DNA from: Macrostomum lignano
Lineage: Eukaryota
Reading direction: 5' to 3'
Length of the DNA stretch: 64,000 bases
Assembly: GCA_002269645.1 (NCBI GenBank)
Contig: NIVC01001665.1
Span: 124,001 to 188,000 of the forward strand
Numbering within the stretch: the first letter of the stretch is position 1; each line of letters begins with the position of its first letter. A program made the translations under genes and the position numbers. The notes under the pieces were generated by a model. That model had not been told where the DNA came from. It was given only the letters and a program-made list of their open reading frames with translations, and did no database searches. Positions 27,322 to 36,300 of the stretch are shown one piece after another.

Positions 27322-30300
27322 GTAAATGCGAAGGTGGTTTATAAAATGAAACGATATTGAATACCTCAAATTGATAAATTGATTAGGCTACGTCAGGGTA
27401 GCCACTGTTTGATGAATCTATTTGACACTCCCAGAAACTTAAAACCCTTCTATCTATTCAGTTTTATTGGCCAAGCAGTCAAGCCCAGCACCCCAAATAC
27501 TTCACACCCTTCTATCTATCCAATTTTATTGGTCAACCGGTCAAGCCCAGCACCCCAAATACTTCACACCCTTCTATCTATTCAGTTTTATTGGCCGACC
27601 AGTCAAGCAGTCAAGCCCAGCACCCCAAATACTTCACACCCTTCTATCTATCCAATTTTATTGGTCAACCGGTCAAGCCCAGCACCCCAAATACTTCACA
27701 CCCTTCTATCTATCCAATTTTATTGGTCAACCGGTCAAGCCCAGCACCCCAAATACTTCACACCCTTCTATCTATTCAGTTTTATTGCCGGACCAGTCAA
27801 GCCCACCACCCAAAATACTTCACACCCTTCTATCTATTCAGTTTTATTGGCCGACCAGTCAAGCCCACCACCCAAAATACTTCACACCCTTCTATCTATT
27901 CAGTTTTATTGGTCAACCGATCAAGCCCAGCACCCCAAATGCAGCAAGCAAAAAGCAAAAAAACAACTAATTAAATTTATAGGTTAATGAGCAAAAATAT
28001 CATACCGAAAAACGGTCAATATTTTTGGTAATTTCAGCCTCGCGATCCGCAAGTATTGCAACAGGCAACTCACGCTCTAAGCAGAATACCTAAACTTCGT
28101 TGGCTAGCGAAGCTACCTCAAGACGAGTCTAAATTGTTGGTTGAGACAGTCTGCGACAGGCTGCAGGCATTGAAAAAACAGCGACCGAGTGTGAGAAGCA
28201 AGCCAATCAATGTAAGTATACAGGGGGTGCGTTTCTTATACTACGATATTGTAAGATATAATATCGCTCTTCTTACTTTTGGACCCACAGGACACAGAGC
28301 GAAAGCAGATTCTTGAAGCCACGGAACTGCTCAGCAGTCTTCCCGAGCTGGACTGGCTTCAAGAAATGCCAGAAGCCCAAAGAGTCACTTTGACGGCCAA
28401 TGTCTGCGACAATTTGCAGCAGTTGAAAAACAGCGGCGATCTCAGGAGTACAGATTTCGGCGAAGCAAGTGTAGGTATTGGTTGGGTTTGAAGTCTTGTA
28501 AAAAAGAATCCAGGTTGCTCACACTATATATAAAATTATCTGACCCTGTAGACAACAGATGAGCAGCAGACAGTGCTTGAAGCAACGCAGTTATTTAGTC
28601 GAATTCCGGAGCTTCAGTGGATCCAGGAGGTTCCTCCGGCGGAGCGGACGCGACTGGCAGCGGCTGTGTGCGACAGCCTGCTGAGCTTCAGGACTGCGGC
28701 TTCTGACATCTCGGTAAGGCGGTTTGTTAACACACCATCGAATACATTAATGTATGGTAAATGAGCTTAAGCAATTCTCATTCAACATTCGACTTGCCTT
28801 AAGGCCGAAGATCGAGAAAAGCTTCAGGAAGCAGCGCGAGTGTTGAGATACGTTCCCGAGCTTCAGTGGCTGAGCACTCTGTCTCAGTCTGAGCAGGTTG
28901 AGCTGGCTGCTGCTCTGGGCAACAAGATGCAGCAGCTGATCAAGGATCCACAGCCCAGGGCTAAGTATTCGGCAGCAGCTGCAGCACGAGAGGTGAGCTT
29001 TTATATTCTTGAGTAATTGCCTCGGCCTAGGGTTTTACGTAAGCGCATGTAAACTTTGTTCATACTTGTATCACGAGAAAACCATTTTTATCAGGCTTCG
29101 TTGCTTTAAAGCACTGTTAAAATTACTACTTCAGGCAGAAGAATCTGAGCTGCTTCAGCAAGCTCTTCAGACTATCGGCGAGTCGTCTCAGCTCCAGTGG
29201 CTCGACGACCTGAGCCAGTCCGACAAGCAGCTGCTGGCTGAAGCCATGTGCGACTCGCTGCAGCAGCTCAGAGCCAGCCAGCAGCTGGCGGCCGCACATC
29301 CGGAGGTGGCGCTCGAGGCGACGCAGCTTCTGAGCAGAGTTCCGGAGCTGCAGTGGATCCAGGAGGTTCCTCAGGCAGAGCGGGCGCGACTGGCAGCAGC
29401 TGTGTGCGACAGCCTGCAGAGCTTCAGGACTGCGGCTTTTGAGACCTGGGTAAATAAGTTAATTGCATGACACAGTATTTAATAAATTGGAGGATGAGAA
29501 GAAGTAAGAATGAGTACGTTCCGTTTACAGGCTGAAGATCGGGAGAAGCTCCAGAAAGCAACGCGAGTACTGAGTGACGTTCCCGAACTTCAGTGGCTGA
29601 GGAGTCTGTCTCAGTCTGAGCAGGACGAGCTGACTACTGCTCTGAGCAGCAAGATGCAGCAGCTGATCAAGGATCCACAGCTCAGGGCAAAATATTCAGC
29701 AGCAGCTGCAGCTCGAGGGGTGAGCTTTCATATTTTTGAGTAAAGGTTCTGGTTGCTGTTTTACGCCGCGTGCAACCTACGCTCGTACAAGGACCACAAT
29801 ACAGATCATACATGTAGCATTTTTAATAAAGTAACGGTAGAAATCGAAAAGTGCTTCAATATGGATATTTTAGGCCGAAGAATCTGAGCTGCTTCAGCAA
29901 GCGCTTCAGATTATCGGCGAGTCGTCTCAGCTGCAGTGGCTCAACGACCTGAGCCAGTCCGACAAGCAGCTGCTGGCTGAAGCCATGTGCGACTCGCTGC
30001 AGCAGCTCAGAGCCAGCCAGCAGCTGGCGGCTGCACATCCGGAGGTGGTGCTCGAGACGACGCAGCTTCTGAGCAGAGTTCCGGAGCTGCAGTGGATCCA
30101 GGAGGCTCCTCAGGCAGATCGAGCGAGACTGGCAGCAGCTGTGTGCGACAGCCTTCAGAGCTTCAGGACTGCGGCTTCTGAGATCTCGGTAAGGCGATTT
30201 GATTACACACCATCGAATAGAATACGATACGGTAAAAAATTGAAAGAATTGCTCAAACATTCGATTTGCTTTAAGACTAAAGATCGAGAGATGCTTCATG

Positions 30301-33300: not shown

Positions 33301-36300
33301 GTAAGGCAGTTCTGTTAAAAAGGGATCAAATAGAATAAGTGAATCTAGTTCCAAGAAATATAGTAGCATTCCTAGTCGATATTGAATCAAACATTCGATG
33401 CTTCTGCAGGCTGAAGATCAGGAAAAACTTCAGGAAGCAGCCAGAGTGTTGGGCGAAGTTCCTGAGCTGCAGTGGCTGAAGAGTCTGTCTCAGTCTGAGC
33501 AGGTCGATCTGATTGCTGCTTTTAGCAAAAAGATGCAGCAGCTGATCAAGGATCCACAGCTCAGAGCTAAGTATTCGGCAGCAGCTGCAGCACGAGGGGT
33601 GAGCTTTTATATTCTTGAGCAAAGATTCCGGTTACTGGTTTAGGCCGTATGCACTTTCCTACAATCACCACGATCGAGATCAAAGCAGTTTTATAGAACA
33701 ACCAAAAAAATTTCTAACATTACTACTTCAGACCGAAGAATCTGAGCTTCTTCAGCAAGCTCTTCAGACTATCGGCGAGTCGTCTCAGCTGCAGTGGCTC
33801 AACGACCTGAGCCAGTTCGACAAGCAGCTGCTGGCAGAAGCCATGTGCGACTCGTTGCAGCAGCTCAGAGCCAGCCAGCAGCTGGCGGCCGCACATCCGG
33901 AGGTGGTGCTCGAGGCGACGCAGCTTCTGAGCAGAGTTCCGGAGCTGCAGTGGATCCAGGAGGTTCCTCAGGCAGAGCGGGCGCGACTGGCAGCAGCTGT
34001 GTGCGACAGCCTTCAGAGCTATGGAAGCGGGAGTGGTTTGGTAGGTTTATGCATGGCGGCAAACAATAGAAAAGATGAGATTTTAAAAAACTTTTTTGTT
34101 ATATTTTTTCAGTCGCCTCACTTTGAAACTTTTATCGAAGCTACGGAGCAGCTGAGCAAAGTTCCTGAGCTGCGTTGGATTCAGGAGGTGCCCCAGGCTG
34201 ACAGGGCTCGGCTTGCTGCTGCAGTCTGCGACAGTGTGAAGAAATTTCAAACTGGTGACGCAACTCACCAAGGACTTGAACTTGCGGTTCGTTTGATTTT
34301 GTTTTTTACACTGCCTAAGTGTCTGCAGATGGATTGAGTGGCTCTATAGCAGTACGCCTGACTCGTGTGTTGTAAGCTGCTTTACACCCTATCTTAGTGT
34401 GCGTGTGTCCAGGAGTTAGCGAAATGGGAATCATTGCAAGGACCACTGACAGGACGTAAAACTCAAGGATCGTGTATTTTTTTGGCCAATTTCTTAGAAA
34501 AATACACCGTCAGATATAAGAAAAGACATTTTTATTACATAATCAATTATTTAATTGATCTGGGGCAGTACAGTGAAGATTACCGTTATTTCATTTTAGC
34601 ATCATGCACAGCTGTGTAGTGAAAGTTTCATAATTATATTTGGGCTTATGAAATAAAAATAAAACAGTAAAAACAATGAAAAACATTTAGAAGAATGATC
34701 CCCAGATCAAATGCAATAAATGATTTTTCTTTCTCTGCAGTGTATTTTTTCCAGGAAACTAGCCTCCAAAAATTACACGGTCTTGGAGCTTTACGTCCTG
34801 TTATACTACAGTGGTCCTTGCATGACTGCTGTGGGTGGGTTGTCTTCTTGATTTACGGCATCTGCTATTTAAGACACCTGAATCTGCTTGTTTTTGACTT
34901 TACCGTTTGAATTTCCCAATACTGCAGCCAACCGATATGCAAGTCGTGTTCGAGGCCACGCAGCTGCTAAGTTCGGTCCCAAAGCTTCACTGGATTCAGG
35001 AGTTGCCTCCAGACGAGCGGTCAGGGCTGGCGGCTGCTGTGTACGGCAGCTTGCAGAGCATGAAGACCAGCGTAAAGTTTGGTACTGGTGAAGATGATGA
35101 TGCAACGTTGTTCGTAAGTCTACTTGTTAGATGACAATTTGCATCGAATCATGTAAGTGAAGGCAACCAACGCGCATACATTACAGACGCGCGACTCACG
35201 TACTGTTGTTGAAGCGACCGAACTTTTGAGCAGAGTGCCCGAGCTTCGCTGGATTCAGGAGTTGCCTGAGACAGACGGGCGCGCTCTTGTCGCGGCCGCA
35301 ATCACCCAGCTGCAACGAAGTACAGCAAAACAATCATCTCCTGAACAAAAGTTTTCGCCTACACCAGCAGAAGCAGAATCTTTGCAGGCAACGTCAAGAC
35401 CAAACACTCGACTCGTTGTTAACGCGAGAAGTTTCTACATCGATCCGTGCTGGAAGTATCGAACAGTTGGGGTAAGTGTCTCAGGTACTTCATGAGTGCA
35501 TAGATGGCTTGCCGCAAAGTTCAATTTTGGTTTTGGCCAGGTTAACTGGGAGATGCACATCATTGAAGCGCCCTTGAAATTGGGGTAGTCGTATGTTGGT
35601 AATTGGTATCCCTTCGTGTGATAAATCAATGAAACAATGAAGACTTGACCCTAGCCCTAGCCTAATCCCTAGTACTAGCCCTAGCCAAAACCCTAGCCCA
35701 AACCCTAGCCCTAGCCCTAGCCAAAACCATAGCCGTAGCCGTAGCTCTAGCCCAGGTCCTAGCCCTAGCCCTAACCCTTTAACGCTAACCTTAATTGAAA
35801 CAAGTGACATTGACAGCGGATATTCAACTTTTTAGACATTAATACACTCAGTTCAATTCTTTACAGCCTCGAATTGCGATGGCATCTTCTACTGGAAGAC
35901 CAGCAGACTCTGCAACAACCGCCGCAGCCGCCGCCCATTCATCAACAGAAGACGAAACTGATGAGTTACAGTTTTCTGGACAATCCAAAGCCGAAGAAAA
36001 GTCATTAGAAGTTGTTCAAAACCGAGACGAAGTTGATGAAGCGACTGCAGTTAAATTCAGCTACAATTCACCAAGTACAGAAGCAGAGTTCACAGTCCCG
36101 CAACAGACAGATCCGCCAAAGGTATGCTCACTGATGCATCAAATCGTTGAGCATTCAAGACAGTTAATACCACAGATACTAAAATAACTAGATGGGCCAC
36201 TCAGGCACATATACTTAGTAAAGCAGCTTTCTACTTTCAGTTTAGTAGCAAAGAAGAATACATAAGCTATTTTATAAAAATAAAGGCAGCTTAAATGACT

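Follow-up and report, generated by a model that had tools for sequence, protein, structure and literature searches.

Introduction

Ninein has a central role in anchoring microtubules and also serves as a dynein adaptor; its human representative, NIN, is about 2,100 amino acids (aa) long. Nin and Nlp combine N-terminal EF-hand pairs with many coiled coils (PMC5004617). In animals other than the one considered here, ninein is an elongated dimer whose N-terminus activates dynein and binds γ-tubulin (PMC5004617, PMC12135376), and this N-terminus suffices for dynein activation (PMC12135376). Isoforms of the mammalian protein differ in a central exon of 707–713 aa (exon 18, skipped in neurons), which switches their localization (PMC12135376). 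Here, we describe a locus of Macrostomum lignano in which a gene of the ninein family apparently carries, in its middle, a block of 20 exons (28038–35471) encoding 27 tandem copies of a predicted helical repeat. The window that we analyzed is a stretch of 64,000 nucleotides (contig NIVC01001665.1, positions 124,001 to 188,000); all coordinates below refer to it, and all exons lie on its + strand. An earlier, sequence-only reading of the window had described the block as a large insertion between the two halves of a giant ninein. A literature search on Macrostomum and ninein found nothing specific.

Results

The block encodes 27 repeat units in one open frame

We interpret the block as a genuine, translated central segment of the ninein orthologue of M. 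lignano, or of a very close relative, whose 27-unit helical array would act as a semi-rigid spacer or scaffold. We put the probability of this interpretation at about 0.55. Exon borders were set by in-frame AG and GT sites around open segments, positions 27000–36500 being read and translated in all + frames. The block so defined consists of 20 exons, each with AG before it and GT after it. A pyrimidine-rich tract and AG lie upstream of every array exon, and a GT(A/G)AG-type sequence lies downstream. All 20 exons are of phase 0/0 and have lengths divisible by 3. The spliced array comprises 1,549 codons and contains no stop; read in the remaining two frames, this DNA yields 58 and 64 stops, respectively. 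The translation includes 27 copies of the motif [PS][EKQ]L[QRHD]W, 41–63 residues apart. The motif did not occur outside the block when both strands of the 64-kb window were searched.

The exons were also recovered blind. A crude dynamic programme based on splice sites and codon bias, run over 16079–62443, found 20 of 20 array exons, 17 of them with identical borders. This gene model over-predicts exons in microsatellites, in a transposon-like open reading frame (ORF) and in a 47-bp satellite, and we trusted it for the block and for clear coiled-coil and EF-hand exons only. The coordinates, exon number and unit count given by the sequence-only reading were exact in every checkable detail. Its statement that the array carries no stop or frameshift agrees with the 1,549 open codons, and the large in-frame deletion that it had reported was confirmed: exon 31291–31569 has 279 nt compared with 315 nt in six paralogues, a loss of 36 nt, or 12 codons.

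The array opens with three A-type units, of which those in exon 1 (28038–28211; SRIPKLRW) and exon 2 (28291–28470; present in the UniProt models P0001 and P0002) are diverged; the third is in exon 3 (28552–28713). Thereafter, 189-nt exons with one C unit each (exon type Y) alternate with 315-nt exons encoding a B and an A unit (exon type X). The C units are in exons 4 (28804–28992), 6 (29531–29719), 8 (30276–30464), 10 (30986–31174), 12 (31661–31849), 14 (32386–32574) and 16 (33410–33598). The B + A pairs are in exons 5 (29135–29449), 7 (29874–30188), 9 (30595–30909), 11 (31291–31569, the A unit being truncated by the 36-nt deletion), 13 (31983–32297), 15 (32986–33300) and 17 (33732–34040; 309 nt, with a diverged end). 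The array closes with an A unit in exon 18 (34113–34286), a diverged A unit in exon 19 (34928–35113) and exon 20 (35187–35471), which encodes the last diverged A unit and a unique tail of 50 residues and ends in phase 0. Each exon type is present in seven genomic copies, 675–1024 bp apart.

Three repeat exons have alternative splice sites that keep the frame: 28190 versus 28211 as the donor of exon 1, 31282 versus 31291 as the acceptor of exon 11 and 35071 versus 35113 as the donor of exon 19. The donor of exon 1 is ambiguous, and the UniProt model P0001 uses 28190, thereby dropping the residues VRSKPIN. No Met or start context was present at the head of the block. ORFs on the antisense strand of the block were dismissed as a by-product of its CAG-, CTG- and GCN-rich codons. 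In one respect the exons have the make-up of a length-tunable cassette array: all 20 are symmetric and any subset could be skipped in frame. Because every exon is of phase 0/0, exon skipping or unequal crossing-over can alter the length of the array while the frame is kept.

Selection on the coding frame

To measure constraint, we compared paralogous exons pairwise by the Nei-Gojobori method. The pooled values were pS 0.102 and pN 0.041 (ratio 0.39) for the 315-nt exons and pS 0.260 and pN 0.105 (ratio 0.36) for the 189-nt exons. When each distinct variant was counted once against the consensus, omega was 0.45 (p=0.011) for the 315-nt exons and 0.38 (p=6e-5) for the 189-nt exons. Mean nucleotide identity was 0.945 among the 315-nt exons and 0.858 among the 189-nt exons; homologous introns were mostly 0.41–0.84 identical, many at the level of unrelated sequence. 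These data support the view that the coding frame of the array is under selection, the exons being held while the introns decay. They also bear out the earlier suggestion of selection for translation, with dN/dS at 0.36–0.45 and exons far more conserved than introns. The synonymous divergence of the 315-nt exons (0.10) was below that of the most similar introns (0.16–0.26), which implies either homogenization restricted to exons or constraint at synonymous sites.

Unit types and history of the array

The units are ∼52–63 aa long and are ordered A A A C (B A C)x6 B A A A A. The 189-nt exons encode, in addition to the C unit, a short extra helix. Over a 46-residue core, identity is 0.31–0.38 between sub-types, 0.92 within B and 0.77 within C. 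Divergence is greatest in the A units at either end, which are 0.38–0.72 identical to the central A units. Three positions (L18, W20 and L32) never vary among the units; A8 and A35 almost never do, and conservation is also strong at L12, P16, E17, Q19 and Q41. A Cys-Asp pair is kept in 17 units, of the A and B types but not of the C type.

The introns of the array range from 72 to 641 nt. Those leading from B + A to C fall into two alternating families, found after exons 3, 7 and 11 versus after exons 5, 9 and 13. The two families are 41–60% identical to each other, and the exons that they flank are 91–97% identical. The intron following exon 16 is 99% identical to that following exon 12. Together, the intron families and the near-identical introns point to an older six-unit period and to a latest duplication of about four exons. 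Given the three diverged sub-types and the eroded ends, the array is old, with a recent burst in its middle. More specifically, a single unit would have been duplicated long ago into A, B and C, and the BAC triplet was amplified in tandem recently, with genomic periods of about 0.7 kb and 1.4 kb. The words insertion and graft, as used in the sequence-only reading, are thus slightly loose: the sub-types and the diverged ends describe an old, internally evolving part of the gene and not a recent graft.

A hidden Markov model (HMM) of the unit found no degenerate copy in the rest of the window, the top outside match having an i-Evalue of 1.7. An origin of the repeat from neighbouring ninein sequence was rejected on the strength of this search.

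Searches for relatives of the repeat

We then compared the repeat with known families. A Pfam scan of array stretches of 340 and 215 aa returned sub-threshold noise, in which AnfG_VnfG scored highest (19.9 bits; cutoff 27) and repeat families were absent. Among PDB sequences, a profile built from 26 units had no match at E<=10. Against 1.84 billion representative proteins, the same profile matched three with E<=0.001, of which an M. lignano model was the best (7.6e-77). The two others were rejected as homologues. P0005 is a PPR-like artefact from a plant; its score adds up 11 identical repeats, the best stretch being 12 residues. P0006, a bacterial protein of 1,590 aa, contains about 20 tandem ∼34-aa 'LSPEQRxYLFEAMKNELKDLIK' repeats to which Pfam assigns no coherent family. 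Its likeness to the unit is confined to the second half, positions 21–45 (an L-S-x-x-E/Q cap and an amphipathic helix), where the match is weak and reaches E=9e-7 only when summed over eight stretches. By contrast with the array, it lacks the invariant L-x-W helix and has another period, and the similarity is most likely convergent.

The unit profile matched no ninein of another animal among the 1.84 billion representatives. In this study, lineage-specific means absent from all sampled taxa, which include the planarian and parasitic flatworm proteomes in UniRef, close relatives of Macrostomum being poorly represented. The repeat is thus apparently an orphan, with no detectable relative outside M. 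lignano. The sequence-only reading had called it unrecognized, and this description was upheld in Pfam, in PDB sequences and in Foldseek, the only credible match being from M. lignano. Likewise, no strong match to a known domain in other nineins, which that reading had named as grounds for abandoning its claim, was found in Pfam, PDB or the 1.84 billion representatives.

Predicted structure of the units

The structure of six consecutive units (exons 5–8) was predicted using AlphaFold2 and a nine-row alignment derived from the array itself. The model was all-helical, with a mean predicted local distance difference test score (pLDDT) of 72 and a predicted template modelling score (pTM) of 0.61. 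In this model, each unit has a helix of ∼14 residues, a helix of 8 residues that starts at the Pro of P-E-L-x-W and carries the invariant L-x-W, and a helix of 18–27 residues; the C units have an extra helix of 13 residues. A three-unit model (pLDDT 66, pTM 0.43) predicted the same secondary structure, with the last helix of the A unit continuous with the first helix of the C unit. Foldseek searches of PDB with these moderate- to low-confidence models assigned no fold: the best E values were 0.16 (TM 0.11) for six units and 0.68 (TM 0.19) for three, and TM scores ranged from 0.1 to 0.3. A repetitive helical rod or solenoid is the most likely fold of the block. Packed as a solenoid, the units would extend by about 1 nm each, and as end-to-end spectrin-type bundles by 2–3 nm each; either arrangement would add some tens of nm.

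The host gene belongs to the ninein family

The identity of the host gene is supported by its two ends. The translation of 22915–23583 matched EF-hand_7 (3.7e-9; 37.3 bits, cutoff 30), EF-hand_6 (3.5e-9) and EF-hand_1 (4.8e-8), all above the Pfam cutoff. The corresponding N-terminal exon, 22963–23582, encodes the EF-hands, with EF-hand_7 and EF-hand_6 above cutoff, and then the start of the coiled coil. A second, weaker EF-hand pair at ∼23200–23400 matched calmodulin with E 0.011. At the other end, the last exon (62133–62443) encodes the ninein-family C-terminal motif and the stop codon. In a database of 5.8 billion proteins, the C-terminal 80 aa matched 'ninein-like protein [Notothenia coriiceps]' with E=1.7e-9 and 47% identity over 90% of the query; pairwise BLASTP of the same pair gave 5e-21. 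The C-terminus also shares a stretch of 17 identical residues with P0004, an unnamed vertebrate-like protein. These data agree with the earlier assignment of the host to ninein, combining EF-hands above cutoff with a C-terminus that matches an annotated ninein-like protein. A query joining the N- and C-terminal parts matched only two unnamed proteins, the ninein name coming from the search with the C-terminus only. In PDB, the N- and C-terminal parts matched calmodulin-like EF-hands and generic coiled coils only, with no ninein entry. The N-terminal exons, too, appear collinear with human NIN, including a PKYVR…GR.FGRR motif at ∼16420–16480.

The exons flanking the block (1,242 aa) contain 0.2% Pro, abound in E, L, K, A, R and Q, and resemble coiled coils in composition; they gave weak, sub-threshold Pfam matches to coiled-coil families. 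The block contains 4.0% Pro, its longest run free of Pro and Gly is 55 residues and its net charge is −71. With prolines every 10–55 residues, the block cannot be one continuous coiled coil. The gene spans about 16079–62443 and would encode a protein of roughly 3,500–3,800 aa, of which the array makes up ∼41–44%. The tally consists of ∼750 aa of N-terminal sequence, 1,549 aa of array, ∼1,215 aa of C-terminal sequence and ∼280 aa from uncertain low-complexity exons.

In the C-terminal coiled coil, the crude model placed seven phase-0 exons that each have exactly 105 nt and thus encode 35 aa, or five heptads: 52754–52858, 52976–53080, 55055–55159, 56166–56270, 58709–58813, 59847–59951 and 60070–60174. 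The same model gave 210-nt exons in the coiled-coil part at 36854–37063 and 54753–54962. The 105-nt exons suggest that the coiled-coil part contains a second, older exon-modular repeat.

The two junctions of the array

The sequence-only reading had placed the array between the two halves of ninein, and the two junctions fared differently. Upstream, the last coiled-coil exon (27022–27323) ends in phase 0 (GEDSHLQ, then gtaaat), and the junction GEDSHLQ/PRDPQVLQQ is present in P0001. A query consisting of this exon and repeat exons 1–4 had only two matches in 5.8 billion proteins, both of them UniProt entries from M. lignano: A0A1I8JLS9 (92% identity, 97% coverage) and A0A1I8I9H7. Where they are collinear with the window, only a few residues differ, which places the window in M. 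lignano or in a near-identical paralogue or relative. The two models begin within the coiled-coil exon at 25387 and proceed via 26270–26384, 26462–26606 and 27022–27323 into the first repeats, after which they jump between repeat copies, as expected of a collapsed older assembly. The upstream junction is thus supported by two independent M. lignano gene models, themselves gene predictions. Downstream, the next candidate exon, 35867–36121, is an open frame after AG in phase 0 and would encode a non-repeat, acidic and Ala-rich linker joined to exon 20; the crude gene model chose a different frame for part of it. The claimed position stands on the upstream side; continuity with the C-terminal half is putative, drawing on phase-0 compatibility and on the lack of any other gene signal.

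Other features of the window

An 11.3-kb array of a 47-bp satellite, with about 240 copies and 97–99% matches, occupies 39946–51224. It fills most of a putative ∼14.8-kb intron of the host gene (37064–51870), and a short related array is found at 37153–37299. Further tandem repeats lie in introns and flanks at 20000–20398, 27430–27940, 35649–35778, 53192–54504, 57373–57974 and 63098–64000. They include a 62/194-bp array that immediately precedes repeat exon 1 and an array of (CCCTAG)n-like hexamers that immediately follows exon 20; (ACAG)∼100 and arrays with 20-bp and 17-bp units also occur in introns and flanks. A locus this prone to repeats fits an expansion of the coding array by unequal crossing-over.

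Upstream of the ninein gene, 9874–10272 and 11142–11714 (+) belong to a separate gene that encodes a PARP catalytic domain (Pfam PF00644, E=2.6e-12). An ORF of 281 aa at 37418–38260 (+), within an intron, had weak helix-turn-helix matches only and may be a transposase remnant. A search of the whole window against Rfam gave no matches.

Discussion

A proposed spacer or scaffold in the middle of ninein

In the arrangement that we favour, the array would sit within a ninein dimer between the N-terminal EF-hand and coiled-coil module and the C-terminal coiled coil with its conserved terminus. There it would serve as a spacer or scaffold, semi-rigid and tens of nanometres long, and might also present 27 similar docking surfaces. 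Unequal crossing-over, of which the BAC amplification is an example, could change its length, and exon skipping might do so as well. From the analysis as a whole, we infer a function as rod, spacer or scaffold, with docking as a possible addition; the spacer, spring or binding array put forward in the sequence-only reading is likewise a hypothesis. A bolder version is speculative: the unit would be an undescribed domain or fold, and the 27-mer a length-tunable ruler or elastic rod setting the distance between a head that binds microtubule minus ends and dynein and a tail that anchors at the centriole or basal body. Copy number and exon choice would then tune the geometry of anchoring between cell types. 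The epidermis of M. lignano is densely multiciliated.

Several observations weigh against the favoured interpretation. Both UniProt models are short, were predicted on a fragmented or collapsed assembly and reach no further than the first few repeats, and exon 1 is missing from P0002. We infer the connection of exon 20 with 35867, and onward over the ∼14.8-kb satellite-filled intron to the C-terminal half, from phase, strand and parsimony. A dN/dS of ∼0.4 represents constraint, though not strong constraint. Moreover, the 315-nt exons have diverged less at synonymous sites than the introns have, so that a contribution of exon-biased gene conversion, alongside purifying selection, is probable. 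Finally, the AlphaFold models have only moderate confidence (pLDDT 66–72) and were built from shallow, self-derived alignments.

Alternative explanations

Two alternatives accept that the block is part of ninein and differ in what it does. The array might be mainly a multivalent docking platform, each unit showing a P-E-L-Q-W / A-x-x-x-L / C-D-S-L-Q surface to the same partner, such as a microtubule-end, pericentriolar material (PCM) or basal-body component, in up to 27 copies, or 54 per dimer. The invariance of L18, W20 and L32 and near-invariance of A8, A35, P16, E17, Q19 and Q41, across sub-types otherwise 31–38% identical, would suit such a surface, but these residues are mostly hydrophobic or small and are a better fit to a structural core. 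In 18 of the 27 units, [ST]x[ILV]P directly precedes L-x-W, with strict SxIP or SxLP in 5, which recalls EB1-binding motifs. Functional SxIP motifs, however, lie in basic, disordered regions rich in Ser and Pro, and the tetrapeptides here are in an acidic, predicted-helical context within a block of net charge −71. An array of EB1-binding motifs proper was rejected for similar reasons: strict [ST]x[IL]P occurs in 5 of 27 units and is followed by E/K-L-x-W inside a predicted helix of a net-acidic block. Overall, we regard a primarily docking role as a serious alternative, if an unlikely one. We find it slightly harder still to regard the array as tolerated, largely neutral filler that lacks a function of its own, generated by unequal crossing-over in a genome very rich in repeats and kept in frame only because breaks would destroy an essential ninein C-terminus. 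The window is indeed filled with tandem repeats, the BAC triplet was amplified recently (within-type identity 0.77–0.92), dN/dS is only moderately under 1, one unit lost 12 residues without harm to the frame, and no homologues are present outside the species. On the other hand, sub-types that are 31–38% identical share the same core positions and helix pattern, which indicates that a fold has been maintained over a long time; nonsynonymous changes are significantly depleted; and the introns have decayed to near-random similarity where the exons have not.

The remaining alternatives deny the block its place in the protein. It is very unlikely that the block is a separate gene or transcript between an EF-hand gene and a coiled-coil gene, or that its exons are skipped as a rule. 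Such a view can draw on a downstream junction that is putative, on the ∼14.8-kb intron with its 11.3-kb satellite between the block region and the C-terminal exons, and on the omission of exon 1 from P0002. It is opposed by phase-0 continuity at both ends of the block, by the two gene models that link the upstream coiled-coil exons to the repeats, by the lack of a Met or start context at the block head, and by the ninein N- and C-terminal signatures lying on one strand with nothing else between them; selection on the frame further argues against exons that are never translated. Hardly credible is an assembly artefact, in which one or two copies would have been spuriously duplicated. The earlier models P0001 and P0002 seem to derive from a collapsed version of the locus, indicating that the region is hard to assemble. 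Nevertheless, the copies differ by 3–18% in exons and by 16–59% in introns, where artefactual duplicates would be near-identical, and the introns differ in length (72–641 nt) and form two alternating families.

Comparison with known systems

Beyond the mammalian exon-18 switch, the array of M. lignano, as a central segment of ninein, would be a natural experiment on spacer length and rigidity in the middle region of the protein. RNAi, in situ hybridization and transgenesis are established in this animal. The orphan repeat is also a candidate new fold for structural work. Because lineage-specific repeat expansions are common in giant cytoskeletal proteins, we expect the impact of this one to be moderate unless a function is shown.

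In its general organization, the array resembles α-solenoids (ARM, HEAT, TPR, PPR and designed repeats), which likewise consist of tandem all-α units of 40–60 residues with a small or hydrophobic core and Pro or Ser helix caps; the designed helical repeat 5cwb was a low-probability Foldseek match (prob 0.08). It differs from them in that no Pfam repeat model reached cutoff and Foldseek found no match, and its order of a medium, a very short and a long helix is unlike that of ARM or HEAT. Spectrin rods, nebulin super-repeats and titin PEVK/Ig cassettes provide a second parallel, with a higher-order repeat, here BAC, built from symmetric exons. The near-continuous helix predicted from the end of one unit into the next further recalls spectrin rods. 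Nevertheless, the array has no sequence or fold relation to these proteins; a spectrin repeat is twice as large as one of its units, in which the middle helix has only 8 residues.

Among nineins, mammalian exon 18 offers a parallel, being also a large, in-frame central segment, located between the dynein-activating N-terminus and the C-terminus. The Macrostomum block is comparably placed and its exons are all skippable in frame, whereas exon 18 is a single large exon that encodes coiled coil and lacks an internal 55-aa repeat. With the ninein and ninein-like proteins at large (vertebrate NIN and NINL, Drosophila Bsg25D/Nin and C. elegans NOCA-2), the M. lignano protein shares EF-hand pairs, a long, Pro-poor, E/K/L/R/Q-rich body that resembles a coiled coil in composition, and a conserved extreme C-terminus. 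It differs in its predicted size of roughly 3,500–3,800 aa, of which ∼1,550 aa are a helical repeat that is not coiled coil. No described member of the family is known to carry this repeat. What is new here is thus, apparently, a ninein-family protein with a large and seemingly orphan helical-repeat array.

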